DNA of 64,000 bases, from positions 4,475-68,474 of the forward strand of contig MQRK01199219.1 in the NCBI GenBank assembly GCA_001938485.1. The letters are read 5' to 3'. The DNA is from Girardia tigrina. Its lineage: Eukaryota. Made by a program: the position numbers and the translations under genes. How positions within the stretch are numbered: position 1 is the stretch's first letter; each line of letters begins with the position of its first letter. The notes beneath the pieces are model-generated. The model was not told the DNA's origin. It did not search any database and worked only from the letters and a program-made list of their open reading frames with translations. Positions 21,843 through 63,700 of the stretch are shown here, piece after piece.

Positions 21843-23820
21843 AATGGATTGCAAACCGAGTTTACCGGTTTTGAAAAAAACCGGTTTTTTTCATTGTTTT
21901 GTAACCTCAGAAACCCGGTTTTCTGATTTATAAAACCCGGTTTTCGTAATTTTATTAAAAATCTTTACATTTTTAATATTTGCATTATTATTTTCTATTT
22001 TTAATTCTCGTAATTCCAATAAAATACATTACTTTATTTATAATTGTTTAAATATTTATTTTATATTTATTTTTTATTAAAGAAATTATTATTCAGTACC
22101 AAGTAAAAGTAAAGAAAATTATAGATATGTGACCTTTAAATCCATTTTTAATAATTGTTTTTTTTAGAATTATGGATTACAAATTCGAGGAATACAAGAA
22201 AGTTATTGAAAATGACAAATCACTTTGGGCATATTTTCTTCGAGAGAGAAATGGTCAAGTGGCAAAATGCAAAACATGTTCAAAAGTAATGAAATGCTTA
22301 GGTGGATCAACTGGTGCACTTCATTCGCATTTGCAAACAGTACACAAAATTACTGCTCTGAAACGAGGATTTAAAGATTGGTGGAAGCAGTGAAACGTCC
22401 GCAAATTTATCCACGCCACCAACCAAAATTTCCTTATCTAAAAAGCAAATTACAGGATATTTCCATAAGAAAAGTGACGATGGCAGTTTTATCATTGGCA
22501 TACTTTGGCAGCGGTTTTATCACGTATGACCGCGAAAGACGGTATGGCCTTTTCTTTATTCTGTACATCATCCGATCTAAGATCGCTACTTGAATCGAAG
22601 GGATTTCGAGATATACCAAAATCGTCAAATACAATTCGGAAAATGGTGTTAAATTATGGTCAAAATATTTGCGATGTAATTAGAAAAAACCTCTCAGACA
22701 TGAAAAAGCGAAGTTTTGGTTTTAGTTTGACTTTCGATGAGTGGACGTCAATATCAAATTTTCGTTATTTAAACATCAACATTCATACTAAACAACAATT
22801 TTGGAATATTGGATTAATTCGTATTATTGGAAGTTTTCCAGCTGAAAAATGTATTCAGATCTTAGAAGAAAAGCTAATGATGTTTCATATTAGTCTGTCA
22901 AGTGACATCGTTTGCGTAACTACAGATGGTGCGTCAGTAATGAAAAACATTGGAAGACTAATTGAAGCTGAACAATAACTTTGCTTTGTACACTCAATCC
23001 ACTTGACTATTTTAAACGTGTTATATTTTAAAGAAAAATCTTCTAGCTCTAATATTTCTATTGAATTTGAACAGACAAAAAATAAGGATATGAAAGATTC
23101 CGACATCGATGACGACGACTTGTTGATAAATTCAATAAATCCTGACCAAATTAATTTTAGTGTTTCGAATGATGAATATAATCATCAAAAAGTTACTCAT
23201 AAAGGATTATTACCTCTTACACATAAGATACGAAAAGTTGTAAAACTTTTTTGAAATTCACCAGTGAAAAACGACGATATTCTCCAAAAATATATTGTAT
23301 CAGAATTTGGAAAAGAAAAAATAGTCTTGGACAGTAAGACACGATGGAACAGTTTACTTTTCATGTTCGAGCGTTTTTATGAATTACCAACATGCGTTCA
23401 AAAATCGTAAATCGATATGAAATCATCATATTCTTTTTCAGATGCTGAATTTAAACTTCTATCAGAAACTATTGCTGTTCTTTTACCCATAAAATTTGGA
23501 ATCGAGTCACTTTGTCGGCAAGATGCAAACCTTTTGACTACAGATGCGACTTTCAAATTTATACTTTCACATTTAGACAAAAGTAGGGGCCAGCTGGCAT
23601 TTGATATGAAAATGGAGCTATTATATCGATTTAAAGAAAGGCAAAAAGATTTATCTAGCTTACTTCATTATCTTCATAACAAATACCAGGTTGTCGATGC
23701 CGAAAATAATTCACATGCTGATATTTTCTCCGGACTTTCAAAAGCATCGATTCTTAAACTTATTGTTCAAATTCTTAATAGAATGACTAATAAATCGAAT
23801 CATGAAGAAATCTCGACAAG
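21843..23820 (+). mobile_element. Decayed, 3'-truncated hAT transposon with BED zinc finger (Ac/hobo/ZBED-like)
   Basis: Subterminal aaaccgg repeats 21850-21945; BED finger LWAYF...AKCKTC...STGALHSHLQTVH; FSLTFDEWTS, VTTDGASVMK, CFVHSIHL, DSKTRWNSL; several stops and frameshifts. Confidence 0.9.
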
Positions 23821-23824
23821 ATAT

Positions 23825-24341
23825 GTGTTATTACACTGGGTGTCACCAGTGTCAAACCTGGTACAGTTGAGAGAACACAACTTTCTTTCAGATTTCCATT
23901 TGGTCAGACATTTCAGTCAAATTGCATCGATGAGACTTCGGATTGTTTTGGATTTTATGGGAAGGCTAAAATTGAGTTGATTGCATTGAGTGCGAGAAGT
24001 TTAACTTTTAACTTAAAGATTAATTTTAAAGATTAACTTTTGGTGTGTTGTTAGTTGTCATCTTTATCATATGTCTCCGTTACCTTGTAAAGTACGGAAC
24101 GATAGAGAAAACATATCGTTTTCTGAAATGGCAATTGATAGCTGCCAATGGTTGGTTTGCGAGAATGGAATTAATTGCATTTAGTGCATTTCTCTTAGTT
24201 TTAAGGAAAAGTGAAATAAATTTATTTTCATCCAATAATTTATTGGATAAATTTTATTTATTTTCGGCAAGCTACCATATAGTGTAATTGCTTAGTGCAT
24301 TTTGTGACCTGATGATGGGATTATTATCTCGAAATGCGTCG

Positions 24342-24346
<5 letters not shown>
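23825..24346 (+). mobile_element. 5'-truncated Penelope-like element (decayed endonuclease remnant plus pLTR with hammerhead)
   Basis: Frameshifted YTG-VTSVKPGT-LREH ... LVRHF resembles GIY-YIG YIGxTxxxLxxRxxEH; ends in an intact hammerhead followed by (TA)n. Confidence 0.6.
24303..24346 (+). ncRNA. Minimal type-I hammerhead ribozyme
   Basis: tgac-CTGATGA-t-gggat[tatt]atctc-GAAA-tgcg-TC-gtta: both core boxes intact, 5-bp stem II (one G-U), helix I 4-6 bp, predicted cleavage after GUC at 24340. Confidence 0.85.
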
Positions 24347-24372
<26 letters not shown>

Positions 24373-24376
<4 letters not shown>

Positions 24377-25664
24377 TTCGTACCAGAAAGAGTGAGAATG
24401 ATGTAATATTTCTATGTTTGTGATCTGTAAAGGCGGAAATTACTTGCGCAGTATATAGTAACATATAAAGAGTAAAAATATGTAATAGTTAAAAAAATAT
24501 TGACAGAAAATATTTATTGGATGATTTATTTGTCTGTATGATGGCGGAAAATCGAAAAAATCTTCGTTTCTATACCTTCTCCCGTTATTCACTCGGCATA
24601 ACGATAAGTGAAATTTATCAGGAAATTATCTCTGTTCATGGTGCTGACAGTGTTGGAGAATCTACAGTGTATCGGTGGATAACTGAATTTGACAATGGCA
24701 AGACTTCTTTTGCTTGGGAAAACTGCGGGAGAAAATCAACAAAAACAACCCCTGAAAACATTCTGTTGGTCTCTGGAATTATTAACGCCAATGGTGCAGT
24801 GACCATTGATGAAATTGAAGGTGAGACATCCCTTAGCCATGGAACCATTCAGCGTATTGTGAGTGACCATTTGGGATTTCGGTATGTTGTCTGTAAGTGG
24901 CCTCCTCATGCATTGTCAAATGATCAAAATGTTAATCGTGTCACTGCTGCAAAAGAATGGTTGAAAATTTTGAAAAGCAAACACCAACATGAACATATTG
25001 TGATGGTGGATGAGAAGTTGTTTTACATGAGAACTATTTGCAAGAAAAGAAGCAACCGTTGCTGGGTCTCGCTGATGGTGATCACAGTGAACTCATTCAT
25101 GTCATGAAGCGTAACCAGTTTGACAGAAAAATCATGACTGTCATTGCAGTGTGCTTCACTGGAAAGTTTCGTTACGAACTGCTACAGGAGAGAGAAAGCA
25201 TGAATAACGAGCTTTATGTTACTTTTCTTGTTAATATGGAGAAGAAGTTTAGTCGACATGTGTTTCCACTCAACTGGTGAAACATGATTTTCGTGCATGA
25301 CAAAGCGAGGCCTCATGTTTCCAAAGTGACGTCCATGTTTCTCGCAAACAGGAATGCTACCTTGCTCCGTCAATCCCCATATTCCCCAGATTATAACATC
25401 TTGGATCGCTTTATTCACCCTTACTTGGAAGACCAGCGACACAAAACCAATTTTCAATCTGCAGATGAGTTACATCAATTCATTACATCAGAACTGAAAA
25501 ATATTTCTGCTGATCGATGGTCATCTGAGATGGAAAACTGATACAATGCCTCTCTAATGTTATAAAGAAGAATGGTGATTATGAATGTTTACACAGGGTT
25601 GTTGTTTTACATTGCTCGTTAAAAATGATATTGACATTTCAAACGTCTTTCTTTCTGGTATGAA

Positions 25665-25668
<4 letters not shown>
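24373..25668 (+). mobile_element. Divergent DD34D mariner, full length, inactivated, inserted in a (TA)n tract
   Basis: TIR ttggttcgtaccagaaag / ctttctggtatgaactaa; (TA)n on both flanks. VDEK ... HDKARPH ... QSPYSPDYNILD has 34 residues between the second and third D; frameshifts and a stop at 25278. Confidence 0.92.
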
Positions 25669-25703
<35 letters not shown>

Positions 25704-26473
25704 TTATGTAATATTCCAAAAATAATATAAAAAATAAAATGCGTTTGATTTATTATATTTACAATAAAATTAAATAATTAATATTAATATTTCACTTCCC
25801 CTATCTCGTTTTTAAAAATAATATAAACGAAGTAATATTATCCCAATTATCTGCCGTATATCCTTATTCTAATCCTCAAATATGTTATCGGCAGCTTTCC
25901 TTATATTCTCGCAACAAAAGATCATTATAAAAAATATACAAAAAACAAAGACTTCAAAGGATTCCATCGAGACAAAACCGATATATAAATAAAGATAAAT
26001 ATTTTATTTAGTTGATTATTACTAAACATTAGATTTTTTTCTGGATAAGTCAAAACAATTGAATGAATTTTACAACACGAATGGGGAAAACCCTGCTTAG
26101 ATAAATAACAGGCGAACAATGGAAATTCCTATGAAAAAAACGAAAAAAAATAAATAAATTGATCAACAGTTTTAATGGTTCTTAAATTTTCATTATTAAC
26201 TTTTATCTCATTCCGCTAAATAGTTTATAATCACGAAATATAATATTTACACCTTTACCAAATGACCATGACACCGGGCTTGGAATTTAATTCATTTTAT
26301 AACTTTACCAATAAATATATTTAATTAAAACAAAACGACAACTCCAGTAATAAAAAATAATTTAACTGAAAACAATTTTGAGTAATAATTTAGTTTTTTT
26401 CAGACTATTTAACAACATATTCCTAAATCTGATTAAATTGGGCTTGAAACCCGTTGACTCATATGCTTGGAAT

Positions 26474-27176
26474 GGGTACGGGACATTTCGACGCGGGGAC
26501 ATTTCGACGCCAGAAATTAGGATTTAAATGAAATAGGAATAAAATGAAATAATTGGTTATTAATTAGGTATTTTAGGATTAAAATGAAATAATTTGTTAT
26601 TAATTAACATTTTTGGGAAAAAATGAAATAATTTGTTACTAATTAGGATTTTGGGGCATAAAATGAAAGAATTTGTTACTAATTAGGAAGTATATTTTCT
26701 AAACTATTTTGTGTTTATATTAAAAATAATATTGAAGTAGTTATTTATATATATTAATAATTATTTATAATTTTTAATCAAAATTTTACATTATATGTGG
26801 ATGGATCAATAGGTCTGTGACATGTTCCGTTTCCAACGTTTTAACGATAATTGCAATTCTATTCACATAAACAAACTTCTATAAATATACATTTTATTCC
26901 CAAAATTCCTAATTAATAACCAATTAATTCATTTCATTCCCAAAAATCCTAATTAATAACAAATTATTTTATTTTATTCCCAAAATTTCTAATTAATAAC
27001 AAATTATTTAATATTTTTCCTAAAATTCCTAATTAATAACCAATTAATTCATTTTATTCCCAAAAATCCTAATTAATAACAAATTATTTAATTTTATTCC
27101 TATTTCATTTAAATCCTAATTTCTGGCGTCGAAATGTCCCCGCGTCGAAACGGCGGTGTCGAGATGTCCTGCTTCG
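26474..27176. mobile_element. Non-autonomous MULE/foldback element
   Basis: Perfect 9-bp TSD GCTTGGAAT (26465-26473 / 27177-27185); long inverted arms starting with ggacatttcgacg repeats and built of ~39-bp tandem units. Confidence 0.9.
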
Positions 27177-27809
27177 GCTTGGAATACGTCTTAAGGAACA
27201 TCCTCAATTAAAAACTCACAATAAAGTTGTAGAGAGTGCAGTTTGGATGTGAATTTTAGAACACAAATATAACATGTGGCTTTTTGAACATTAATCTTGC
27301 AACCATAAATAAATTTACAATTTATTTTAAAAATAATAGATAGTAAAAGCAATTCACCATGAAGAAGAATACATTGAAATTGTAAAATGGAAACTAAATT
27401 AAATAAAATTTCAATTTTAAATTAAAAAATAAATATTGAATATCAAAAATTTTAAATAAAAAGATTAATTGCAAGACTTATTAAAGTTCGAAAAAGCCTA
27501 CAAATAATATATTTGACAAAAAATAATACCGTAAATGATCAAAAATTTTTAAAAGGTTTTAAAATTTTTAAATTAAATTGCTCTTAAATGACAAAACCTC
27601 AAAAAAAACATCTATCAGATATTAAGATGGTAGACACATTACTCTAAGTGGCATATAATTTATATTCTTTATTTAGAAAATTATGCTTTTGGTTTGGAAA
27701 TTATACTATTGACTTGGAAATGGTATACAAAGATACTTTTAACTATTTTATAGAGAATGTAAAAAAAAAACGATTGCATGTTATAATCTTTTTTTATATT
27801 CTTGATTAA

Positions 27810-28420
27810 AAAAACTGAACGCAATCTTCAGACTAAATTAACAATAGTTTTTGCAGCTCATATAAATGAAAATGATAATTGTGCAATTAATTATTTAAAA
27901 GTCTCTATTTGAAAATGTTTAACAGAGAAGTAGAGTGTGAAGCTTTAATATTAATTTTTGTATCCATGGATCTTCTTTCATTTCACAGCAGGCATGACAC
28001 GTTACTCTCTCCCAATAATTTCTAAATCGATTACACAGAATTTAAAAATCATTTTCTTCGATTTTCTTTTTATATTTTAAACTATGTTCCGCGAGGATTG
28101 GTCCCATTATCCGATTGATTTAAAAAGAAAATCGAAGAAAATGATTTTCAAATTCTATGTAATCGATTTAAAAATTACGGGTAGAGTAACGTGAAACACC
28201 TTATTTATAAGATCCATCGATCCGAAAATTAATATTCAAACTTCACACTCAACTTCTCTGTTAAACATTTTCAAATAAGACATTTATTACATAATTAATT
28301 ACATAATCATCATTTTCATATATATGCTGTAAAAACTAGTGTTAATTTATTCTGAAAATGGCGGGTAATCTGTAGAAATTTATAACAATAAATTTTACAA
28401 AATGGTATTCAGTTTTCATT
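27810..28420. mobile_element. Two Penelope-like 3' ends joined head-to-head (inverted repeat, ~280-bp arms)
   Basis: Both arms match 39520-39850; the right arm encodes IEENDFQILCNRFKNY ... IRSIDPKINIQTSHSTSLLNIFK* (GIY-YIG C-terminus); decayed hammerhead at 28352. Confidence 0.85.
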
Positions 28421-30591
28421 TAAAAGGATTAAAATAATTTTCTTTAAAAACAATATTTTATCAAAATTGTCTCTATGAAATCAGTTTAGTTGAATTTTTT
28501 AGTTTAGATTTTAAATAATTTTATTCAGTTTCCTTCATGATGAATTATTTTATTATCGATTATGTTTAAAATTAATTTTGAAAGGGTATTAGTGATTACA
28601 ATAATGTTAATAATGATTTAAACAGTTTTAATCGTCACTCTCTTTCAATAATTCTTAACTAAAGTACGCCTAAGTTTCGAGAATTTATACCATACAATGT
28701 TTTCTATACCTAGCAATATTACGTCTCCTTCATTACGATTGTGCTATCGGATTCTTTACAGAGATTATGTGAAATATCTCCTATACATAACGTTTCACGC
28801 CAACGACATGAATGATTAATTGTTGAATATACTTCTTATGTATTTTGAGTATGTGATATTATTTATTAATTTATCGCATTATTTGGAATTTTTACTATTT
28901 TAAACCCTTTTGGATATGACACAGTTAAAACTTATCAAATTGCTAAACAGATATTATTAATGTCACAAGTTTAATCGTGATCTTGAACATCTGAAGATTT
29001 TTTATTAAATGTTTAATTAAAGCTTGTTTATTTATGGTTATTTTGTTAAGGTTCTTTTCAGTTTTTGAATGAAGGATTCTAACGCACAGGGCCAATTGGG
29101 AAGCAACTACAGCTATAATTATTGCCATTTATGATATTCCTACATCTCTTCTTTCATCGTCAACGGGCAAATTGAATCGAAAAATTTGTTTAAATAAAAT
29201 CGTGCCCACTTTATTTTTGACATCGTCTACATCAGTATATATCAGTAAAATCGGCATATCCTGATTCTAAAATGATTTTTAATTTCACTTTTTTTATTTA
29301 ACAAACTTCAGTAATCAATAATCTAGAGAATATTCCTGTCGATTTCTTTACAATTTCGCTTTGGATTCGTCATTAAGGAGTTGCTAGAAATCTTCCATTT
29401 AAATTGATATTGTGTCATAAAATTCAATAATCAATGACGATAAATTTTAAAAAAATACTCGATCAATATCCAAATTTCATTTAGACTAAGCAAACGTTGA
29501 TAGGAAAAGATTTCAACAAAAAAAATAAAATAAGAATTTTATCGTCCACACAAAAATTTCATTTTAGTACAAAAATTTTATAATTAAAAAGCATATTTCT
29601 TTTATTATTCAATATGAAACAGTTAAATTTGTTAATTAACAAAGTGTGGTAGAAGAAGTCATTGCAGTTCATAATTTTTGTAACAAGCTTCCTTTAGCTT
29701 TGCTCCTGACTTTTAGAAACAATGAACCCAGAATTTGATAAATCAGGAAGTATTATACTTATATTTTTTTACTTTTTACATTCTTATTAGAAAAATGTAT
29801 TAAATTGATTCAGTCCTAGGGTTCATATATACCAACCTCTGCACAAAGTTGTTCATAGGTATAAATTGTGTGTATGACTTACAATTTAACTGACAAAAAT
29901 GATTCTTTTTATCGTTTTGTTCGTAACCAAACTTTATATTCATGTATCGTGCGTATTCAAGCCATACACTATTTTTCTTCCAACCCTTATTGTCTTTTTT
30001 TATCACTTTTACTTTTTTAATGATAATGTCTCTATTTCATTGTACCCAGAGGGTTTCATCAGTAATCCCATATTGGAAATATTCCCTTAGAACTCTGAAC
30101 GCATGCTACAACATCACGGACCTCATACAAATAAAATCTTTCGATATAATTATTTATCCAATTTGATAAAGTTTATCTCATTCATTTAACTCATTCTACA
30201 TTTACAGATTGTTGTTTTCACCATAAATAATCTTGAAACTACAGAAAAGAAGTATAGGCGTAAATGGAAGATTCCACATGTGTATGATTACAAGTTAAGG
30301 GAGAAGATATGGTTTTATAAATAATTTCTTTTATCAAAATTAATGGGTTCTTAAAAAATTGTAAATCGAGAAATTGTTTTGCAATTATATAATTTATTTT
30401 TGTTGAAACAAGTTATTGTATTTATATAAAGTTTATAGAATCTAACAGTTCCTGGCCCGGGTTGATCACTTTAAATTTGCTTCTTCGATTGAATTTTCTC
30501 AACCTAAAATAAGATTTCTTGGTCAAACTAAATTGTTTTGTTGACGTCGACTTCGAATATATTATTTATTTATCTATAATGTTTTTGTTCT

Positions 30592-30850
30592 TGTGAGGGA
30601 AAAATCTGAATGTTGTAAGTTTGTTGCTTGTATGCTGTTTAGATTTGTGACTCTCCTACTCAGATGGGATTGATATGTTATTGATTAATTATATAAATCT
30701 AATGATATTAATTTAATCAGATTAATGTTCAAATACTAATTAATTAAAAGTTTTATTATTATAAATTCTCGTAATATTTTTTAGTAAAACTATTTTAACT
30801 TATTAAATTTTAGATATTTTCGAAATTCATCCATTTAAAAATATATTTCA
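30592..30850 (+). mobile_element. Solo-LTR-like element, TGTGAGG family, 3'-truncated at a Penelope remnant
   Basis: tgtgagggaaaaat ... gactctcctactcagatgggattgatatg, nearly identical to the 57720 copy; similarity stops near 30850. Confidence 0.8.
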
Positions 30851-31100
30851 AGACAATATATTTCGACGGATGTACCGTCATCTTCAGGTCACTAATTAAT
30901 AATCAATTCACCTGTATATAAATACAAAAATGATGATTATGCACTCTCATTCTCAATAAGCTGGTTGAGACTGCCGATTGAGCATTTATTTTAGGGCAAT
31001 GTGACCTAATTTACAATGCTTCACATGACACTCTCTCTCAATAACTGTCGAATTGGGGCTTAAATTGGACATCAATCCATACAGCGATGACAAATTCCAA
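30845..31100 (-). mobile_element. Penelope-like 3' remnant (GIY-YIG C-terminus plus pLTR)
   Basis: Minus strand FDSY*ERVSCEAL*IRSHCPKINAQSAVSTSLL, homologous to the C-termini at 39600 and 44671; followed by a hammerhead. Confidence 0.8.
30852..30890 (-). ncRNA. Minimal type-I hammerhead ribozyme
   Basis: gac-CTGAAGA-t-gacgg[tacat]ccgtc-GAAA-tata-TT-gtc: perfect 5-bp stem II, 3-bp helix I, AUU cleavage triplet. Confidence 0.88.
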
Positions 31101-34100
31101 TACCAGATTAAAAATGACGAAATACTTAGTAAAGCTACAAACATTATCATGAATATATTAGCTTCTGATAATTCAAACGTATATGTTGTTTCTTTATATG
31201 CTGATCTCCTTTGCCTACTTTTTCCTTTTGCTTCTAGTCACAATATTGTGAGAAAATGTCTGGAAAAACTTTGTATTTAGTTCAGTATGTTTGAGTCTCT
31301 AGATCCTAATTGTCCTCAATATATGCAATGGCGCCAATTAAACAAAAATTGTGGTGTTTGGATTTTAAGGATCTTTAGAGATTTTGATTTTTTAATTACT
31401 TCATATCTTTTTGAAAATATTTTTGGTTATTATTACGGACTGGGTTGTAATACGAGTAATATTTGAATTTCGGCAATTTGCCAAAATCGATTACATAACA
31501 GTAGGTGCTGTTCTTCTGATCACTGCAATGCTCCAAACGAAACAGAATTGGCCTACATGATGAAAGAAGTGATTTATTATAATCCGATTCTTGAAGAAAA
31601 TAACAATCAATATTATTTGATTTTCATTATTGTTATTGTGATTATTCTTTTCTTTTTGGCTTGTGAACTGATTCGAAGGAAACACTGATCAGTGAGATTT
31701 GAACCGATCAAAAAAAACGAACTGAAGATTCGATATCTGCGGCGCTCCAACGTCCCAAAAGCCGGCAGCAAGGTCCGGGTATGCTAATTTATTTTTCCTC
31801 CCCCGACCAAATTTTTTCCCTCTTTCGCCAGCGTGCAGCGGCCGCAAAACCGCTACGCCCGCTCTAGCACCAGTTAATCATCGTGAAACTAAAATATTAT
31901 TATTATTTATATTTAATTTTTTTATCAATATTTATATTATTTTATATTGTTATAATGTTTCACAAATTAAATTTATTGTATTAATCAATAATTAGCCATT
32001 TTCTGCAAAATTATTCTGTGATTATCCACAAATATCTTAATAAATTAAAAAAATTAAATTTGAATTTGTGTTCCTCTTTGATTTGTCATAATACCATATA
32101 TTTTTGATATATTTTCGTATTAAGTATATTTATAGACTCCTTACTAATTATAGTTCATTTGATTAAATCATTGTCATGAGAAATTTTCTAAAAAACTACC
32201 GATTTTCTGGACCCGGTTTATATCACTCTTTCCGATAATTTTTCCGCCATAAAAATAACATTTTGGTGGTTTTAGGTATAAAAAAGCCTTAAAGACTTGA
32301 CTATTCAAATCAGCTATGGATACTAACTATTCGGTCTAAAATTTTCAATCCAGAAAAGCAGCTCAAGATTCCGCCATGATCATGAGGTTGGACCGTACCG
32401 AAACATACACCAGTGACCAAGAATTCCCATCAAAATCCTAATTCAATTAAAAAAAACTTTCAAACAATAGCAAATTAATTATAGAAATTTTAAAAACAAA
32501 TTTAGTAATAAATAAAAATACAATCTTAATCAAGTTTGGTCCCAATCGTATTGCTCTCACGTCATTTGATATAAAAAAATAAGTTGAACTATAAAAAAAC
32601 TTTGTTTGAATAAACAGTAAATGAGAAATTAAAAGTGTGATGTTCAAAAACAAGTCGAAAAGTATGAAAATGTAGAGATTTATGTCTATTAACAAAAAAA
32701 ACTTTGTTTATTATTCATGATGTTCTGTTTTATTCGATGGAATTTATATGTCTCGACCGATCTTTATATTGTCTAGTAGGCAGTATGGAGTTCGAGTCTC
32801 ACACACATAAATACTCCCCTTAACTTGCTCGTCATTTTTCCATCCGAGCTTCTCGATCTGGCCACTACATCTCGATTCTGAATCTTTAAAACTGAGAAAG
32901 TGTGCTCAAAAAATATGTATAGTCCTCACGATTATGAAATCTCACTTCAAATGACATTCTGATTTGAAAAAGAAGCTGCAGAATTCCATCCCGGAAAGTT
33001 TCAGTCGATCGTTGTGGTTTCCGTAATATTTTACTGTTAAATCATTGATAATATAAGAGTGGTTTAAAAAAAGTATTTTATTAATTGACTCCTTTCATAT
33101 TTGAACAAAATATTTTTATTGTGTAAACAGAACATTTTTGGCGTCCAAATTTCAAACTTTAGAGCATGTTACAATATTTGAGAAAAAGAGACTTAAAATA
33201 TTTTAATTTACTTAAGAAAAAAATTTAGAAAGTCTAACTTCAAATAAAAAAGTTTTGAGGAAATATGATATGTATCAGACTTCTTTCCGGAAACAAAAGT
33301 CAATGTGCACTCATGAAATTAGAAAGCTCAAAATTTTTGTTCATTGAAAATAAACTCAGTTCATATATTTTACAAAATAATTGAAAAGAAAAGAAAAATT
33401 AATTCTGATAATATTATATTATTAAAAATATTTAAAGTATATAATTTGAGAAGACATCTTAATTGATGTTAAGGCTTAAAATTTTGACATAAATGATAAA
33501 TCAAATTTTCTCATAAAAATGTTCTGTTCTCTCTGTTTCTTTTTAAAAGTATATATATATAAATAATTTAAAATTCCTTTAAAAAAATCAAAATTTTTAA
33601 AATTATTTAAAAAAATTTTAGGAACCCGTCCCAAATATGTATGACGTTTGCATCTATATACCGAGATGCATATTGAACCAAAGATCAAATTCTTGATCTC
33701 AATATTTAAGAACAACTTTAACTTTTAAACCTGTATTCAGGGTAAATGTCTCTATAAAATACTTACAAGATTTACGAGATACAAAAAATGAATTTGGTAT
33801 TCCTATTTTTTTGGTCATTTAGGATTTTTAAATGTTATACATTTTATATTCATTCAATAAAAAACTCCAGTATAATTATTAATAAATCGACCAATTATCC
33901 AAAATAAGAATAAATTGATTATTTAATAGTCAAAATTTGGATTAAACACATATCAACATGAAAGCATTAAAAAACAATCGAATAAATTCTGTATTAATGG
34001 ACAAATATTTTGAAAAATAAATAAATATTATTATTTATTGTTAAAATTGTTGTGAAAGAGAATATTTAACTAAGAAAAATATATTTGAATTAAAATTTAC

Positions 34101-34301
34101 AATACTGATTATTAAAATAACACACATTCCAAAACATTAATATTTACATAATTATTCCACAAAAATGATGAATAAATTTATCCTAAGTTTTAAATTTAAT
34201 ATAATTAAATTAAATTTTGAAAAATATCAAAATTATTCAGGTCATTTGTTAATGTCTTAATCATTTAAAAGTATTTTTGAAAAAAAATAATAATTGGAGA
34301 T

Positions 34302-35900
34302 TGTGAGGAATATTTTCGAATAGTATTTCTTGTATGTTGTGTTTGGAATGTTGTTTGTATGATTTTGTTTCTTTCATCTATTGGGTTGGCCAAAAAGTCA
34401 TTGCGTTTTTTACTAAAATATTTATTATCAAAAAATGACATGGATGCACAAATATTTTTACACGATATACTGTCCATTATTTTCAATCACTTTCTTCCAC
34501 CTTTCCGGTAGCTTCATTATTCCTGATTCATAAAAACCTTTGCCTTTGTCAGCAAAAAAGCCGTCTATGAACGATTTGATGTCATCATCACTTGCGATTG
34601 TTTTTCTGTTTAAGGAATTCTGCAGTGATCTAAATAAATGAAAATCCGATGGGGCCAAGTCTGGAGAAAACGGTGGGTGCGGCAAAACCTCCCAACCCAG
34701 TGATAAGAGTTTCTGGCGAGTGGTCAAACTTGTATGTGGTCTTGTGTTATCATGCTGAATTATAACTCCTTTTCGATTTGCCAATTCAGGACGTTCCTGT
34801 AGAATTGAATGAGCCAATTTCTCCAGCTGACCACAGTATCTGTCTGAATTGATAGTTTCATTCCTCAGAAGAAGTTCAAAAAACACAATTCCTTTAAAAT
34901 CCCACCAGACGAAAAGCATAACTTCTTTTGGTGAATTTCTGCTTTTTGAATCGTTTTGGTAGGCTCACCACGTTTTTTCCATGATCGTTTCCACATTGTT
35001 GTAAACAATCCATTTTTCGTCACCCGTAATCAAGCGCTTCAAAAATGGATCACTTTGTTCTCGATTCAAAAGGGAATCGCAAATGTCTATACATTTCACT
35101 AAATGCATTTCTTTTAGTTCATGTGGTAACCACATATCGAGTTTACTGACGAATCCAAGTTTCTTTAAATGACTTCCAACACTTGATTTTGATATTTCCA
35201 GAGTCTCTGCAACTTCTCTTGTCTTCATATGTGGTTTAGATTTGATCAGTGCTGTTATTTTGTCGCCATCAACTTCAACTGGTCGACCGGAGCGTGGCGC
35301 ATCTTTCAGATGAAATTTTTCAGAACGAAATTTAGAAAACCAGTATTGACACTGTCGAAGTTTTAAGGAGTCACTACCATATACAAAACATATCTTCTTA
35401 TGAGCTTGCACAGCGGTTTTCCCTTTGCGAAAATAATGCAACAAAACATGACGAATATGCTCATTTTGATTTTCCAGTTCGAATTGACGGTAAAGTAATA
35501 AATTAAAACAAAATCAATTAATATTTTGTATAAACATAGTCTGAAAATTAAGGTTTCAGAATATATAATTGAATTTAAACTTTATCACATCGTTTTATAT
35601 TTTCAAGCTTTTTATTAGGACGTACTCAAAAACGCAATGAATTTTTGGCCAACCCAATAGTTGGAAGATTGATGTTTTGAATGTTTTGAACCATCGGATT
35701 ATTTGGACAAGTTTGAAATGTAAATATCAATTTTAAAATTAAATTAAGATATTTTAATCAATAAATATATAATAATATTTTAATCAAAACTTTTAAAATA
35801 TATTTGAAACTGATTTTAATCCTGACGAAGGTATTTAAAAATTTAAAAAAAATTAAAAATCAAATAGACTTAAAATTCATCAAAAACTTTTAGAAAACTA
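34302..35900 (+). mobile_element. Solo-LTR-like element, TGTGAGG family, split by a mariner
   Basis: 34302-34380 joined to 35660 onward aligns with the reverse complement of 59700-59992; 3' end not resolved. Confidence 0.7.
34381..35657 (-). mobile_element. Mariner, mellifera-subfamily-like, full length (1277 bp), inactivated; same family as 15449
   Basis: TIR ttgggttggccaaaaagtcattgcgttttt, TA TSD; [28 protein letters not shown] (DD34D); start codon mutated to CTG; frameshifts near 34920-34990. Confidence 0.96.
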
Positions 35901-37059
35901 AAATGATGAAATATTTTTCAAACAAATTTGTATCATCAGATAAAAAATGTATTAATTTTTGTCTTTTTCCTTTGAAAAAGACAGTTGTTCGGTACTGGAG
36001 AATCGAGGTTATCATTGATTGAAAGATGTGCTCACGAAATGAAGGTTGTAAATGTACCCTCAGTAAACTAAATTTCGTTAGTTGATTGAGGATTATTTTT
36101 ACTAAACAAATAATAAACTATTTTAGATAGACCAAATGTAATAATCAAAACAAATTAAGAACAATTAACGGAAGGGTAAAGACGAGGTAGAATTGTTTTT
36201 TTAATTATTAACACCAACGAGAAACAGAGATTATTGAGAATCGAACTTTATTCAAGTTAGACTTACGGCTCTGCTGAATATCGCTTCTTTAATTTCGAAT
36301 GTGACGAGTGAGTGAGGATATTGAACAACGCGAGAATTGTTGTTACCGAGGGTCGATGAATATATGATATAAATGTACGGAAGTTGATTGCTTTGCTATT
36401 CGATATAATATGGCTATCTTCCTTGATGAACGAGATATTTTGGAGATTGTAATTGTATGTATAAAAATTTTTAAATTTTCCAAGTATTTATATTATTCAT
36501 CTGGACTTAACATTTATCATTTGCGTTTAATCAAATTTTGAACTTAATTAGACTTAGTTAAGCTAGGATCTTTTAAGGGTTCTAAATTCTAGAGGGAATA
36601 AATAAACCTAGAAGAACGTTTTATGAACGGGATTAGTCAACAGAAGGAGATTTTTTTCAGCATGACAATGTAAAACCTCGTGCTTAAAGTTCTCATATTG
36701 AAGGTATGGATGGATTCTAGGAGGTTATAAACAATTACAACTTAACTTTATTAAGAATTTTTTGATTAAAATTATGGTGAAGCTCAACAATTTATATTAT
36801 TTCATAAAATTATTTTCAAATGATTATTGTATAATAATTAATATAAAATTAATTTTAATAATTTTTACTATAAATTCAAATATTATTCTAATTCTTTATT
36901 TTTTATTAAATATTTTAAGTTAACAAAATAATTCACTCAATAATTCAGATTTTACACATAATTATATTTTTGAGTTATATAATAACAAAAATAATAATAA
37001 ATTTAATTTCTTTAAATCAAATGGTAATTTTGTCATTAAACAAAAATAACACCATTTTA

Positions 37060-37350
37060 ATTTTACATTTTTATTGAAAACATGTTTCGCCACTTTTGTG
37101 GCATCTTCAGTTCTGTATTTAATTAGAAAGTTATTGTTTATATAGAAAGATGACCATTACGTCACAGTGCATTACGTCAAAATACTCTAATATGATTGGA
37201 CGAATCACTTTGTACATTTAGACTAGGTTTACAAAATTTTATCAAGAGTGTTTCAGTAATTGTCATTTCATAATTGTGATCAAAGTTACTAATCAAAACC
37301 CGAAAATCATTTCATTTAATTTACGGGTTTGACTATGTAACTTTTGTAAA
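37060..37350 (-). mobile_element. Penelope-like 3' remnant (GIY-YIG C-terminus plus pLTR)
   Basis: Minus strand NDFRVLISNFDHNYEMTITETLLIKFCKPSLNVQSDSSNHIRVF*, then two TGACGTAA, TATATAAA, a hammerhead and AATAAA. Confidence 0.85.
37076..37113 (-). ncRNA. Minimal type-I hammerhead ribozyme
   Basis: gaa-CTGAAGA-t-gccac[aaaa]gtggc-GAAA-catg-TT-ttc: perfect 5-bp stem II, palindromic ACATGT helix III, GUU triplet. Confidence 0.9.
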
Positions 37351-38149
37351 TAATCACTCTTAAAGCATTTTAAAACATAAGAAACACAAAAACGAAAATA
37401 ATCAATACCAACTATGTTAAACAACAACAATCTTACTCTATATAGCTCTTCCTAAATGATCTTTCGGGTTCTTCTTTCATTTTCAATTGATCTTCTTAAA
37501 AGCTTCTTTTTAAACTTTGAACTGTCTTCACCCAGAAATAACGAATGAATTTTTACATTATGGATGAATTTCGGTACCATATTTTCATTCTGCATATCAA
37601 TAAAAAATTTATTTTTTTATTTTAAATTAAAATAATAATAATTAATTAATTATTCTGTAAAAATCTTATTATTATTTATGAATAATAATAATTATTAATT
37701 ATTAATAAAATGTGAATTTTTCAAAAATTTATAACAGGTTTCATCTCGAAACACAAAAAAACATAATTTTCAATAAAACCTCATGCGACATTGTTTTATC
37801 CACGTAAATATTCATTTAAAACACTTGTCAATAAATTAAAACAAACAATGAAGATTTATAAAATAAAACTGGAAATTTTTTCACTTTTTTTTCTCCAAAC
37901 AAAACGAATTTTTGCTTTTAACTTTTATTGGTAAACTTTTGTTCTCTTGAAACAAAAGAAAAAAAATACAAATTCAACAAGTGATAAAATTAAAACAATT
38001 TTTTATAAATTATTGAAAGTATTTCAAACATATTTTAACACCTTAAATAAGCATAAAAACATTAAAAAAAATTTGAAATAATAAAAAAATATTATTAATT
38101 TTTAAAAATTATTATAAATAATATAATCATACCAAAAAAAAATTTTGGG

Positions 38150-38498
38150 TACAAGCTTTTATAATTTGTCATAAGTTAGCGGTTTTTATTTTTTTCTGTA
38201 TCTATTTCACCCACTTCCCACATTTTTTTGACTGAATTATCAAAGTCTACGAGGCGAAAACCCGCTTTCTATTTGGATTTAGATGTAGCAAATTTCAAAG
38301 CCTACTACTGAAGAAAACAATTACTTTTTTTTGGCCAAACTAAAGGCGGTAGATGAGCAGTGACAGTGAAAAAGTGTATTGTCACCTAGAATACATCGGT
38401 CATGAAAGTTTCATGTGAACGGGAAGTGGGTGAATTTTCGATCGCAAGATTTGATGCATCCAGACAGACAAACAAATGAAACGTAATAAAAGCTTGTA
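38150..38498. mobile_element. Non-autonomous DNA element (MITE or Helentron-associated HINE/DINE-like)
   Basis: TIR tacaagcttttat / ataaaagcttgta; inner IR ttcacccacttccc / gggaagtgggtgaa; short (CAGA)n near the right end. Confidence 0.65.
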
Positions 38499-38581
38499 AA
38501 AAAGACTTTCATTTACTTATGGAAAAAAACAAGAAAGAAAAAATGATTAAAATAATCAAAAAACTTTTGTCACTAGTTTGC

Positions 38582-39035
38582 TGTTAAGAGCATTTAGACA
38601 ATTATTATTAGAACATTTATTAGTATCACATTTAGACTCATCGCATCTCTCGGAAGATCGTTCACAGTTTGACATAATTCTAATGGATTTTATTTCTATC
38701 TTTATAGTAATGATTATTCGAACAATTTTTATAAATCTTTCTAAAATATTTAATATATTTTAATTTTTAAAAATATTTAATTTTTTTCTTATAAGAACTT
38801 TAAATAAAAATATTTTATAAAATTGTAAAATGATTAAGCATGATTTAAATTGTTAAATTCAAAAATTTACACTTATCAGATTATTATCATTTCGTTATTT
38901 TTATTTTAATTATGTCTCAATATTCCATCGCCATAAATACCAAAAATGAACCACCAATTTCCATCTGGGGGGCGGAGAATCACCATTCTAGTTTCAACAT
39001 ATTCAAAACATATTGTATCCCATACAATTTCAAAT
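38582..39035 (-). mobile_element. Solo-LTR-like element, TGTGAGG family, 5' end lost
   Basis: Motif gattctccgccccccagatggaaattgg (38956-38983); 3' end AATAAA...ctcttaaca; closest to the 55483 copy. Confidence 0.7.
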
Positions 39036-39464
39036 GTCCATGTTGAAATTAAAACTTTAATGAAATCAGAGATATAATAGATTTAATTACAAATTGTCAC
39101 CACCAGACGATATAATTTTTCCTAGGTCATCTCGTATTTCTTTTGATTTCACGAGTTAGTTTATAACATGTTTGCTTATATTTAACAAATTATATATACT
39201 GATGATTGAATATGAAAATTCAAAACATGTCCAATAATCAATTTCTTAAAAAAGCTTTATTTAATAATAAGTCACGCACTCCTCTCCGTTTGTGCTCGGA
39301 TCATGTTTATGAATAAACTTATAATTGGTGTAACGCCAATTATGCAAAAGCAAAAGGACATTTCCAGTGCCCATTCAGAGGATGTTACGCGTCCACCGTA
39401 ACCGCCAAAGGTATGTGGACCCTCTAAAGAGCCTTATGCTCAATACCATTGAAAGAGATGGGAG

Positions 39465-39850
39465 GCCCACATTGGAGAGACATCTCATCGTCTCTGCAAA
39501 CGGATCAAAGAGCATAATCGATTGGATTATGGTACCAATCTTGCTGGCGAGATAATTTAAAATGTAAAAATATCGAAGAAAATGATTTTCAAATTCTATG
39601 TAATCGATTTAAAAATTATTGGGAGAGAGTAACGTGTGAGGCCTTATTAATAAGATCCATCAATCCGAAAATTAATATTTAAACTTCAGACTCAACTTCT
39701 CTGTTAAACATTTTCAAATAAAGCATTTATGACATGATTAAATGCATGATCATATAAGCTGCAAAAACTAATGTTAATTTAGTCTGACAACAGCGAGTAA
39801 TCCGCTGAAATTAATAACCATACATTTTAAAAAATGGTGTTCAGTTTTTT
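39465..39850 (+). mobile_element. Penelope-like 3' remnant (GIY-YIG endonuclease plus pLTR with decayed hammerhead)
   Basis: HIGETSHRLCKRIKEH ... IEENDFQILCNRFKNYWERVTCEALLIRSINPKINI*; hammerhead-like CTGACAA...GAAA-ttaa-TA at 39784-39816. Confidence 0.85.
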
Positions 39851-41021
39851 GAACTAAATTATTTTTTAATTAAATAATTATTATTATTTTTAAAAATTAT
39901 TATAAAAAAGGACTTACATTTTCTTATCGAAAAAAAACAAGAAAGAAAAAGAAAGAAATAAAATAGTCATTTTGACAAATTGTCAAACAACACAAGCAAA
40001 CTTCAATTAGAAGAATGTTAAACCAAAAGATTATTGTGACATTTTTGTTTTGTTTTTCAACTGAAAGTACAACAAAATTTTTCAAAACAATTTTGCTTTC
40101 AAAATTGTTTTTCATTTTTTCATTCATTTTCTTTTGTTCTTTTATCATTTCTTTTTCATAATCTTAGCAAAAAGAAGAAAACCTTTTTGAATGTGATTTA
40201 TTAAAAAAAGAATCAAAAGAACTCGTTTCAACAATGTCATTTCGTTGACATTTCTGGCACTTATCAAAGAATAAAATTATTTAAATTTCAATTAAAAATT
40301 TGATAAATAAATTAATTAATCCAAAAAAATTATGACTAAAATTATTCTTAGACTCAGAGTTTTGGATTTCACGTTTCCTTGTGTTGAAAAATATGTATTT
40401 TGTTAATTTTTAATAAATAAAATTTGATATGGAAGTGGCCTTTTAAAACCCGTAGAGCGGAGGTTTTGTCCAAAAGATGTTTCAAAAGATTTCATTCGGA
40501 AAGGTTTAATGTTAAGAAACTTTTCATCGACCTCAATAATGACTTCAACCTTGATCAAGTTTCAAATGAAAGGACCTATTGAAAACATAACGAGATAATT
40601 ATAATAATGAAAAATCCGTGGGTGAAGGTTATTATTTGTGTTATTTTAGACGAAAAAAGGCTCAAATATCACTGGTAAAGATTCTTCGGTGACTGACGAC
40701 CGACCTAAGGCAAGAGTAGCAGTACCAAGAAGGACTTTCGAATGGTATTCGTTATATTGCTGGAGGAATGAATGTTGTGTACAATATTATTATATATTCT
40801 TAATCAATCACATATTTTATTAATTTATGAATTTCTTATTTTTGTATGAAAAAGGTATCAGAAAAATGACTCAATATAATTTAATCAAATATATTTAAAC
40901 ATTTTTATGGCGTAATGGTTATTTTTTTATAGTTTTTGTGAAAAGTAAAAAGAGGTGTTTTAAAATTATCAATTTTTATAATAATAATTAAATTTAGTGA
41001 GCCAATCAAAATTTATTATAG

Positions 41022-41062
41022 AGTTTATTAATTTCGACAGTTTGACCGTCATCCTCAGAACT
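41022..41062 (-). ncRNA. Minimal type-I hammerhead ribozyme
   Basis: agtt-CTGAGGA-t-gacgg[tcaaa]ctgtc-GAAA-ttaa-TA-aact: 5-bp stem II (one G-U), 4-bp helix I, palindromic ATTAAT helix III, AUA triplet; AATAAA downstream. Confidence 0.88.
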
Positions 41063-41434
41063 ATTATTTTGTATTTTATTTTTTTCTTATTTATATTTGT
41101 TTACATACTTTGTAAAACTTATAAAATTTGTATAGAGTACTTTCTCATATTTGATATGTGCCACACTCAAGAAGTAGTGGCGCTATCAAAGAAAACGTAA
41201 CCCGACTTTTCAAATAAAATTTATTTTTCATAAGAAGCAAGTAATTTCGGTATCGATTCTCGGGGAAATCTCCATTTACATAAACAAATATTTCGCAGCC
41301 CGAATAATTGTTCTTAAAGGATTTTTCAAAGCTTTTCTGCGGCTGTTGAGCAAACAAATATGAGACTACATTATTTTAATTTTTTAGTAGTGAAATGTTG
41401 ATCATTGAGAACTGACTTAAAATGGTTAAATATA

Positions 41435-42510
41435 TTAGGGGTACCCAAATGTTATGTCGTTTTTTTGATATATTTTTCTAAATCGTTTAACTGCCGCCTA
41501 CATTATTTTGACTCTACCATTTTTATTTATTAATTTCAGTTAGTGNNNNNNNNNNNNNNNNNNNNNNNNNNNNNNNNNNNNNNNNNNNNNNNNNNNNNNN
41601 NNNNNNNNNNNNNNNNNNNNNNNNNNNNNNNNNNNNNNNNNNNNNNNNNNNNNNNNNNNNNNNNNNNNNNNNNNNNNNNNNNNNNNNNNNNNNNNNNNNN
41701 NNNNNNNNNNNNNNNNNNNNNNNNNNNNNNNNNNNNNNNNNNNNNNNNNNNNNNNNNNNNNNNNNNNNNNNNNNNNNNNNNNNNNNNNNNNNNNNNNNNN
41801 NNNNNNNNNNNNNNNNNNNNNNNNNNNNNNNNNNNNNNNNNNNNNNNNNNNNNNNNNNNNNNNNNNNNNNNNNNNNNNNNNNNNNNNNNNNNNNNNNNNN
41901 NNNNNNNNNNNNNNNNNNNNNNNNNNNNNNNNNNNNNNNNNNNNNNNNNNNNNNNNNNNNNNNNNNNNNNNNNNNNNNNNNNNNNNNNNNNNNNNNNNNN
42001 NNNNNNNNNNNNNNNNNNNNNNNNNNNNNNNNNNNNNNNNNNNNNNNNNNNNNNNNNNNNNNNATTAAACCGCTTGAGAGACGCAATGACTACTAAATGC
42101 CCGGGATTGCTCAACAGAAATCGCGTTATCCTACAGCATGATAACGCTAGACCACATGCTGCAAAGAAAACACAGCAAAATTTGAAAGAATTGGGATGGG
42201 AAGTTCTACCTCATCCGGCATACTCTCCTGACTTGGCCCCTTCGGATTACCATCTCTTTAGATNTTTGCAACATTATCTTCAGGGTAAAAAATTCCTATC
42301 AATGGATGATGTCCAAAATGGACTGGTGAAGTTTTTCGAATCCAAGGACGAATCCTTTTTTTCTAATGGCATAGAAAAACTTATATCACGTTGGGAACAG
42401 GTCATCGATTGCGATGGGGACTATTTTTCTGATTAAATAAATGTTTTATACGGTTTTATTTTTGTTTCTAAAAATCAATAAAAAACGACATAAAATTTGG
42501 GTACCCCTAA
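41435..42510 (+). mobile_element. Mariner (DD34D); 5' part of transposase in a 518-N gap
   Basis: TIR ttaggggtacccaaatgttatgtcgttttt / aaaaacgacataaaatttgggtacccctaa, TA TSD; QHDNARPH ... [16 protein letters not shown] open to the stop at 42436. Confidence 0.95.
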
Positions 42511-44670: not shown

Positions 44671-45120
44671 TTATTTGTTCAAAATCGACACAAATTCACT
44701 TTGAACATTTAAGCATGGTTTTAAATGCTTTATTAATAATGCCTCAGTGATTATCCTCTCATGATATGTGTCAAAATTTTTCTTCAAAACTGTAAATTCA
44801 GTTTCATAGTTAACTTTATCTCTATTTCTGCATTTTTTAATGTGATCTAGAATCGAGCTATTCCTACTCAATTGGGTGTGTTCAGCTATTCTAGTGCGGA
44901 GATGACGATTTGTTTCTCCAATGTACAAGGATTCACACTGTAAATTTAAATTGATATACTAGATTAGCTTGGACACCCGATGGAGTTTTTGATTTATTTG
45001 AGAAATATCTCGATAGTTTATTAGTTATAAAGATCACCCGCAAATTAAAACCCGAAAGAACCTTTTTCATTAAGCCTTTCCTGAAATCAGACGCGCCTTC
45101 AGAAAATGGTAATTTTAAAT
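44671..45120 (-). mobile_element. Penelope-like fragment: RT C-terminal linker plus GIY-YIG endonuclease
   Basis: KLPFS ... VIFITNKLSRYFSNKSKTP ... NLVYQF, frameshift, then CESLYIGETNRHLRTRIAEH ... ERIITEALLIKHLKPCLNVQ. Confidence 0.9.
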
Positions 45121-46024
45121 TTATTGATTTTATTACATTACTGCTATCATTATTTATAATGTTTTCATTTTTATTTTATTATTATTATTATCATTTTTAT
45201 TATTTTATATATACATACATATATATAATTAATTGGTATTAACAATACAGTAACGATAATTGAATCCAGAACAAGGATTATGTTTTCTATGATCGATGTT
45301 TGTAGTGACATTAATGTGAAAATTCTGACATTCTAACAAGGCAAATTCCTGTCTTTTTATTATCTTATTTTTTTAATTATTCTAATGAAATTCAGGTTGG
45401 ACTAGCGAAATAAATCAGAATCCAATTTACTTAATTTTGATTTTAAGAACTAATTCAATTGGAATATGATGAAACAATTCTTGTTTATATCTTCAGTATT
45501 TTTGAATTTCATGAAATTTTTATGTGAATAAATTTTTGAAGAAATATTTGTCGTTTTTCTTCACTATTAATTTTTTATCTGTAATGGATTTATCTCCTGA
45601 GTCGAGTGCTTCGCCAAATGATAACCGCTACAATGTTGTTCAAGTTAAATAAAATTTTGACTAAAAATATTTATTTTAGTGTATTTAAGTAACATAATAT
45701 CTCTCCTTTTGACGTCTCCTGTCTTTTTTGACTTCCTATGTGTCCACCCATTGGTAATTAAAAAAATTTAAATTATTAATTTTTAAAAATTTTGTATCTC
45801 GAACATTCTCAAGAGACATACTTATTATTGCTTAATGGTTATTGGTATTAACAATATAGTAACGATAATTGAATCCCGTACAAGGATTATGTTTTTATTA
45901 TTAAAGGATCTTTCCGTGAAACCCGAAAACACCGAAAAATATCCGAAAATTTTAGGTGACCCTAACCGAATTAATGAAAATCCACCCGTTTGAAAACTTT
46001 AACCGAAATTGTCAGTGATAACTA

Positions 46025-63229: not shown

Positions 63230-63700
63230 TTGGATTCTTCACTAAAGTATCAAAACTTCGTCAGTCTCTAAGAAAGCTCCTACTTCCTAGTGAATATTTA
63301 TAATAGCTGAGCCATTCAATCTCCGATTTGATGTCGTGTTTCATAAGTAAGTCTTGATTCTGCGTAATGTAGAAAAAAGTCGTTCAGATGTGGCTGTTGT
63401 TACTGGTAAAGTTGCAAATATTCAAGCGATGGATGAAGTCCATTGAAATATATTTTTGATTAATGCAATGATCCCTCCACATCGTCACTTCGCCAAAAAA
63501 GACTTCCTTAGTGCAATTAATATCACTTGGTTATTTTTCATTACTGGCTTCTATAGATACGAGAATTTCGTTATCTGCTGCATGTTTAATATTTTGAGGA
63601 AGAAAAATGTCTATGTTCTGCAAAATTAATATTCATTTAAAAAACGTAGAGGTGATTAAGATCATAAATAAAATTTTTCAGATGGGATTTTCTTAAATTT
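63230..63700 (-). pseudogene. hAT transposase C-terminal dimerisation-domain remnant
   Basis: IFATLPVTTATSERLFSTLRRIKTYL*NTTSNRRLNG matches the hAT dimerisation consensus. Confidence 0.85.

Follow-up and report, generated by a model that had tools for sequence, protein, structure and literature searches.

Results

Four hammerhead motifs with a minimal helix III

We analyzed a 64,000 nt stretch of Girardia tigrina DNA (contig MQRK01199219.1 of assembly GCA_001938485.1, positions 4,475 to 68,474 of the forward strand), hereafter called the window and numbered from its first letter. The window contains four complete hammerhead ribozyme cores at 24309-24340 (+), 30855-30887 (−), 37079-37110 (−) and 41026-41058 (−), designated H1 to H4, together with remnants of Penelope-like elements (PLEs), the kind of retroelement to which the ribozymes very probably belong. 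A preliminary description made from the sequence had placed four motifs of hammerhead architecture at these sites, and both direct reading and a strict pattern search confirmed it.

Each motif consists of a short 5′ strand of helix I, CUGANGA, an extra U, stem II, GAAA, a 4 nt loop, UH and the 3′ strand of helix I. The core residues C3-U4-G5-A6-N7-G8-A9, G12-A13-A14-A15.1 and U16.1-H17 are exact in all four motifs, H17 being C, U, U and A in H1, H2, H3 and H4, respectively. They also share the unpaired U between A9 and position 10.1, the G10.1-C11.1 closing pair, and a helix III that is reduced to 1 bp (A15.1-U16.1) capped by the 4 nt loop. Stem II comprises 5-6 bp, and helix I of 3-5 bp is built from the 5′ and 3′ flanks, which is the type-I topology.

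H1 (24301-24348, +) has the CUGAUGA core, a GGGAU/AUCUC stem II and the loop UGCG followed by UC, and is predicted to be cleaved after 24340. On the opposite strand, H2 (30847-30895) combines stem II GACGG/CCGUC with loop UAUA and UU, H3 (37071-37118) combines GCCAC/GUGGC with CAUG and UU, and H4 (41018-41066) combines GACGG(U)/(A)CUGUC, including one G-U pair, with UUAA and UA; their predicted cleavage sites lie after 30855, 37079 and 41026, respectively. H3 is the same as its family form on other contigs, H2 differs from the abundant form of its family in one base of loop 2, and H4 departs by three changes from the form that predominates in the stem II family most like its own. H1 has lost the CpG of its loop and 3 nt of loop 2.

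The hexamers formed by loop 3 and its closing pair are AUGCGU in H1, AUAUAU in H2, ACAUGU in H3 and AUUAAU in H4. As had been described, three of them are perfect palindromes and the first self-pairs through G-U. The four hexamers indeed differ in their letters, but by comparison with its family AUGCGU is a product of CpG-to-TpG decay of ACGCGU, halfway along, and not a distinct design.

In the strict pattern, CTGANGA-T followed by 13-18 nt and GAAA-NNNN-TH, the core letters, the extra U and the spacing were fixed and no pairing was demanded. It matched the window exactly four times compared with 0.15 expected, and none of 100 dinucleotide shuffles reached four matches; shuffled sequence is thus not matched at a comparable rate. 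A looser pattern gave three more matches in the window, which we took as chance, their stems being unpaired. These three are what speaks for regarding H1 to H4, too, as accidental hits of a short descriptor in AT-rich DNA. We rejected this explanation as practically negligible in probability: besides the excess over expectation, the stems of all four motifs pair although the pattern did not demand it, the genome holds thousands of near-identical copies, a control pattern is matched at only ~1.4% of the rate in the genome, and the pairs covary strongly (see below).

High copy number and loop usage in the genome

The G. tigrina assembly is AT-rich and comprises 1.43 Gb in 255,254 contigs. The strict pattern matched 45,321 times in 1.428 Gb, compared with 651 matches for the reversed control pattern (~1.4%). 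At this density of approximately one per 31 kb, ~2 motifs are expected per 64 kb window, and we estimate the Poisson chance of four or more at ~0.15. The occurrence of four motifs in 17 kb, to which attention had been drawn, is therefore real but not unusual. Many short contigs (e.g. L003, L011, L019, L021, L022 and L059-L062, and further L068-L070, L075-L077, L080 and L082) have an end that lies 5-50 nt upstream of a hammerhead. Apparently, the assembly breaks off just inside the near-identical ends of a high-copy element, so that the true copy number is probably undercounted.

Y..R loops account for 41,385 of the 45,321 strict matches (91%). When the spacing was relaxed to 11-24 nt, UAUA and UUAA were each found in 12,816 genome matches, CAUG in 12,479 and CGCG in 4,493. 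With the bulged U kept and a stem II segment of 12-23 nt, CYRG loops, mainly CUAG among the matches listed, were found 1,461 times, and UCGA and UGCA together with the non-palindromic UCCA and UGGA 145 times. We also examined an unbiased sample consisting of the window motifs and the first 30 loci, on which no pairing demand was placed (n=34). Its loops are perfect palindromes in 29 cases, compared with 6% expected by chance; the stems are paired at all five closing positions in 26 of the 34, and 20 of the 23 distinct stems have G10.1-C11.1.

Hammerheads near the 3′ ends of 5′-truncated insertions

To characterize the surroundings of the four ribozymes, we compared them with other copies in the genome (loci numbered with the prefix L) and with a hidden Markov model (HMM) of the endonuclease built from PLE open reading frames (ORFs) of the same genome. 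H3 lies in a 5′-truncated PLE copy (37037-37598, −) that is 96% identical to L029. Its endonuclease remnant (37180-37598) matches the HMM with an E-value of 5.5e-18 and stops 69 nt before the ribozyme; the tail extends ~40 nt past the H3 cleavage site, and other copies of the family stop at the point matching ~37037 next to (TA)n. The H2 stub (30823-31055, −), 94-96% identical to L011 and L019, retains a C-terminal GIY-YIG remnant 72 nt upstream of the ribozyme, which is a weaker match with 47% amino-acid identity to the C-terminus of the L046 endonuclease.

The H1 copy (24090-24374, +) is likewise 5′-truncated, is 76-90% identical to L018, L063, L058 and L003, and ends in (TA)15 at 24345-24374; its similarity to relatives stops ~30-35 nt past the ribozyme. 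Members of its family have ragged 5′ ends at −219 to −20 nt from the ribozyme and a common 3′ end ~30-40 nt past it, often by (TA)n. The H4 stub of ~110 bp (40963-41073, −) is 81-90% identical to other genome copies, with the similarity starting 3-15 nt upstream of the core and running 40-63 nt past the ribozyme (positions 228-343 of the 401 nt query). Target-primed reverse transcription with 5′ truncation leaves ragged 5′ ends combined with fixed 3′ ends as its signature. For PLEs, a tail of 30-40 bp, (TA)n targets, complex inverted or tandem layouts and assembly breaks have been described (PMC8557442). The (TA)n-flanked stub ends fit the (TA)n target preference known for some PLE clades, as do those of H3-family contigs from other samples.

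The association extends beyond the window. A GIY-YIG profile gave 2,832 first-look candidates in the genome; RVT_1 is followed by GIY-YIG in one element at L038, and several other loci have ORFs of 290-390 aa ending in GIY-YIG. Loci picked solely for their endonuclease usually have a hammerhead after it in the same orientation; from the end of the match the distance is mostly 70-157 nt and in a few cases up to 296 nt. These data make it very probable that the four motifs are the 3′-terminal hammerheads of four families of PLEs, or of short elements dependent on PLEs, left in 5′-truncated stubs.

Several observations weigh against this assignment. Neither the endonuclease HMM nor the sequence comparisons revealed an endonuclease remnant or similarity to PLE proteins beside H1 or H4, and none of the sampled H1-family copies is longer than ~440 nt; only the ribozyme type, the pattern of 5′ truncation and the (TA)n end place these two with the PLE kind. 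No Rfam hammerhead family matched at the gathering threshold in the whole window, nor at E-values up to 10 in 23000-42500, so that the Rfam scan proposed as a check was negative in the window. This is probably because the loop-closed helix III has only 1 bp, and we regard it as a blind spot of standard annotation and not as an argument against the fold. In addition, the public RNA data are Logan contigs, most from tiny runs of uncertain type, which cannot show RNA ends: contigs of two metatranscriptomes of leaf litter run uncut through the H3 cleavage site to ends adjoining (TA)n, and they show neither transcription nor non-cleavage. The proposal that the motifs are minimal type-I hammerheads of PLEs held for the ribozyme type at all four sites; a PLE coding remnant was found beside H2 and H3 and none beside H1 or H4.

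It may be that the H1 family is not a PLE in the strict sense but a short non-autonomous element. A wider form of this idea is that the motifs belong to retrozyme-like repeats, which are short and non-autonomous, are transcribed, self-cleave, circularize and are mobilized by PLE proteins, and are not truncated PLEs. The small size of the sampled H1-family copies and their lack of upstream coding similarity point in this direction, and a 2026 preprint derives animal retrozymes from the pseudo-long terminal repeats (pLTRs) of PLEs. Nevertheless, tandem arrays of 170-400 nt units are absent from the window, in which four single copies lie 4-6 kb apart, the endonuclease ORF remnants mark H2 and H3 as truncated PLEs, and the 5′ ends are ragged instead of defining unit-length repeats. 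Moreover, family sequence is kept 25-65 nt beyond the predicted cleavage site in every copy compared, which argues that each was copied from RNA that was uncut at that ribozyme. We therefore consider a retrozyme-like origin of the four motifs unlikely.

Other PLE remnants were noticed in the course of the analysis. The best-preserved endonuclease remnant in the window (44674-45175, −; HMM E-value 2e-40) has no recognizable hammerhead within 250 nt downstream, and this PLE copy is 3′-truncated or disrupted. The family with stem II GCCG-AAA-UGGU often forms head-to-head inverted pairs of endonuclease and hammerhead 0.3-1.4 kb apart, with the ribozymes on the minus and plus strands at 4656-4684 and 6125-6153 in L043, 2565-2593 and 3924-3952 in L047, 1126-1154 and 1462-1490 in L078, and 86-114 and 791-819 in L066; both L043 copies have the loop UUCG instead of the CGCG expected for the family. 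Within the window, a long near-perfect inverted repeat at 28029-28164 gave the only Rfam matches, sub-threshold ones to plant microRNA precursors on both strands (48 bits, gathering threshold 90). As it is flanked by two PLE 3′ fragments in opposite orientation, an endonuclease remnant on the minus strand (27961-28104) and its mirror image on the plus strand (28139-28335), the repeat most likely marks the point at which two inverted PLE copies meet head to head rather than a microRNA gene.

Covariation and the distribution of palindromes among families

We aligned 24 ribozymes from about a dozen families (alignment A2). Paired cells amount to 91.6%, and the covariation score is 0.80, a value that none of 500 shuffles reached, compared with 0.26 after shuffling; slid partners scored 0.21 at most. 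Changes on both sides occur in helix I, in stem II and in both variable pairs of the palindrome. Among the 24 sequences, the three helix I pairs next to the core covary between C-G, U-A, A-U and G-C, although no descriptor demanded them. This substantiates the statement that stem II differs in sequence among the motifs yet remains paired. The compensated changes within the palindrome provide good comparative support for the published model in which these ribozymes act as dimers.

At least 15 stem II families use four main palindromes (UAUA, UUAA, CAUG and CGCG), to which nearly all copies belong, and a rarer fifth (CUAG), the last mainly in the family with stem II GCCA-AUA-UGGC. Among the matches listed, UAUA occurs with at least four stem II types (GACGG-UAGAU-CCGUC, GACGG-UUAAA-CCGUC, GGUGG-AAAAU-CCACC and GACGG-AUAUU-CCGUC), UUAA and CAUG with at least five each and CGCG with two. 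Narrow families are nearly uniform for one palindrome; the hexamers are thus linked to families without being private to them. Clusters based on the 400 nt upstream flank mix hexamers, CGCG with CAUG and UAUA with UUAA. Tabulating hexamer against family, as had been suggested, therefore bore out a linkage but no one-to-one relation. Endonuclease similarity separates two clades, one with C..G loops (CGCG and CAUG, and CUAG by stem similarity) versus one with U..A loops (UAUA and UUAA). As far as these sequences show, the outer loop pair reflects descent, and within clades compensated double changes have flipped the inner one.

The preliminary description interpreted the palindromes as a family-specific pairing code, that is, as sequences maintained by selection because they confine the activation of a ribozyme to partners of the same family. 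By nearest-neighbor energy, the self-duplexes are calculated at −7.5 kcal/mol for ACGCGU, −4.6 kcal/mol for ACAUGU, −0.8 kcal/mol for AUAUAU and −0.2 kcal/mol for AUUAAU, and duplexes between hexamers of different families at about −0.8 kcal/mol or weaker. We used only these hexamer energies, as cofolds of whole motifs gave alternative pairings and not the textbook double hammerhead. The orthogonality of the stronger hexamers (self −7.5 and −4.6) and the near-uniformity of each narrow family are what a code would predict. So are near-equal stem II sequences that carry different inner pairs, namely GCCG..UGGU with CGCG, GCCG..UGGC with CAUG and GCCA..UGGC with CUAG, and the occurrence of GACGG-UUAAA-CCGUC with either UAUA or UUAA.

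However, with four palindromes spread over at least 15 stem II families, a hexamer names no family, and the agreement of the outer pair with the endonuclease clade is what descent alone would give. The self-duplexes of AUAUAU and AUUAAU are too weak to drive pairing in trans; for these AU-only hexamers it is implausible unless a common transcript or a protein assists. It is accepted that the ribozyme pairs with a second copy in its own transcript, where a code is needless (PMC4209133, PMC6765202). Two transitions separate the minor palindromes from the main ones, as in the series CGCG to UGCG to UGCA in old H1-family copies and in UUAA to UCGA, and the rare UCGA and UGCA loops occur in families that normally have UUAA and CGCG, respectively, which looks like drift with compensation. 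A pairing code is thus very unlikely.

A coarser version is that the helix III palindrome and helix I, both intermolecular in the dimer, diverge faster between sister PLE lineages than the intramolecular stem II does, forming an incompatibility system with five palindromes among lineages that share the genome. It is hinted at by the sister families that are near-identical in stem II and differ in the inner loop pair, but these sequences would fit drift with compensation equally well, and we consider the version just as improbable as the code itself. If it were true, selection would favor ribozymes and RNAs whose partners are restricted to the same lineage, in the manner of retroviral dimer-initiation sites. 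The latter carry a 6 nt self-complementary sequence whose variants could restrict which RNAs pair. The comparison is an analogy only, as the G. tigrina motifs give no sign of a kissing-loop, packaging or partner-choice role and their hexamers are common to many families.

Decayed hammerheads and neighboring genes

To look for decayed copies, we built a covariance model (R1) from alignment A2 and scanned the window with filters off. The intact motifs scored 45-60 bits (51 for H1, 59.9 for H2, 45.2 for H3 and 52 for H4), all four being in the training set of the model. Seven relics were found in addition. The highest score, 25.3 bits, belongs to 60817-60886 (−), in which CUGAAGA-U and stem II are intact but bases have been added and the A before the loop is lost. 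The relic at 39776-39824 (+; 22.7 bits) lies downstream of an endonuclease remnant (39206-39727) and keeps the loop UUAA, with CUGACAA resulting from a change of G8 to A. G12 is lost in 39191-39239 (+; 19.3 bits; AAAA for GAAA), in which the loop CAUG is kept, and G8 is again changed to A (CUGAAAA) in 28344-28392 (+; 18.3 bits), which has the loop UUUA. C3, G12 and the loop are mutated in 50416-50463 (+; 16.4 bits), downstream of an endonuclease remnant at 50146-50313. The relic at 63419-63462 (+; 13.3 bits) has lost its 5′ half, and that at 27790-27839 (−; 10.9 bits) stops after the first 12 nt of the ribozyme and has an upstream flank in common with the 39.8 kb relic. Intact motifs thus make up approximately a third to 40% of the recognizable hammerheads in the window.

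The ORFs beside H1 and H4 were considered as PLE genes and rejected, as they are remnants of mariner/Mos1 and hAT/zf-BED elements. Three mariner/Mos1 transposase remnants lie at 24517-25541 (+), 34458-35444 (−) and 41543-42436 (+), with matches to HTH_48, Transposase_1 and DDE_3 across the three copies; the copy at 34775-35544 shares 92% identity with a counterpart on another contig (L052). Directly upstream of the H1 stub and unrelated to it, a BED zinc finger match (zf-BED) was found at 22172-22393 (+). Same-strand ORFs up to 23980 resemble the tail of a hAT-type transposase by eye, for which Pfam gave no supporting match. The lowest G+C content in the window, 14%, was observed in the 2 kb stretch 46001-48000.

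The ribozyme cores had been described as cleaner than the adjacent stop-ridden ORFs, possibly as a sign of selection. This comparison turned out not to be relevant: the neighbors are mostly mariner and hAT remnants rather than PLE genes, and their decay says nothing about selection on the ribozymes. H2 and H3 are young copies whose flanks are 94-96% identical to those of relatives, the H1 and H4 copies are older, and at least six relics in the window have decayed cores. We relied on the window relics, as most fetched loci had been chosen by an exact ribozyme match and are biased for comparing the divergence of core and flank. The intact cores fit small target size and age, and there is no sign of purifying selection on the genomic copies. 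Nothing supports the recruitment of the ribozymes at the H1 to H4 loci by the host.

Discussion

The G. tigrina motifs closely resemble the minimal hammerheads of PLEs, which are reported to comprise numerous consensus families with covariation in a single genome and to have one additional nucleotide between A9 and 10.1, a conserved G10.1-C11.1 pair and a palindrome formed by 15.2-16.2 and loop 3 (Cervera & de la Pena 2014, PMC4209133). They are alike in the core, the open helix I of 3-5 bp, the bulge between A9 and G10.1 and the 1 bp helix III. They are also alike in setting, since the known examples mostly stand alone in association with truncated PLEs (PMC4209133; Lunse, Weinberg & Breaker 2017, via PMC6765202) and lie near the 3′ end of an element encoding reverse transcriptase and GIY-YIG endonuclease, as do H2 and H3. 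Stem II is 4-6 bp in G. tigrina compared with 7-8 bp in the Schistosoma families, and no other structural difference was seen. The number of copies does differ: at least 45,000 in 1.43 Gb, compared with ~9,000 in Xenopus tropicalis, the largest in the 2014 paper (PMC4209133).

Metazoan non-LTR retrozymes (Cervera & de la Pena 2020, PMC7229834) likewise have hammerheads of type I within AT-rich repeats of animals. Those of amphibians have a weak helix III with a palindromic tetraloop and cleave best as dimers (PMC7229834), in which they are like the motifs described here, and their probable dependence on PLE machinery (2026 preprint) is shared with our assignment. However, retrozymes form tandem units of 170-400 nt with canonical contacts between loop 1 and loop 2, whereas the G. 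tigrina copies are single and 5′-truncated and have a minimal helix I without loop 1. In the double hammerheads of newt satellite RNA and avocado sunblotch viroid (ASBVd), a short self-complementary helix III is also stable only between copies (Forster et al. 1988, cited in PMC4209133), but these are tandem satellite or viroid RNAs, in contrast to the dispersed retroelement ends studied here.

Taking the motifs as PLE-type 3′ hammerheads, we propose the following mechanism. Each isolated stub of ~110-560 bp would derive from an element whose GIY-YIG endonuclease ORF is followed at ~70-125 nt by the ribozyme, with the 3′ end of the copy another 25-65 nt further on. A ribozyme would then remain in every 5′-truncated insertion, which explains the ~45,000 copies. 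In active elements, according to the literature, a ribozyme has hardly any helix III by itself; two ribozymes on one tandem or pLTR transcript would pair their A-NNNN-U palindromes into a helix III of 6 bp, and this activation would probably be helped by a protein of the element. The window copies are solitary members of four families; the nearest intact hammerheads are 4-6 kb away with palindromes that do not match, and H1 is on the strand opposite to the other three. Judging from this arrangement, they most likely form no active dimers and are inert relics whose intact appearance is due to their small size and, for two of the copies, to their young age.

The sequence kept past the cleavage site means that the reverse-transcribed RNA was uncut at that ribozyme. 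In 2024, uncleaved or unprocessed RNA was reported as the main insertion substrate, and protein-assisted cleavage was described for one PLE (PMC11167929). The 25-65 nt retained in all copies compared here fit that finding.

These motifs carry little weight as a discovery, for the class is already known: publications from 2014-2017 onwards cover minimal hammerheads of PLEs, their huge copy numbers, the palindromic helix III and the dimer model. For annotation, the present case means that standard procedures miss such motifs, as the Rfam hammerhead models do. For the class itself, the compensated palindrome switches offer clean comparative support for the dimer model, and with its copy number G. 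tigrina represents an extreme case and a natural data set for the evolution of intermolecular helices in a dimeric ribozyme.

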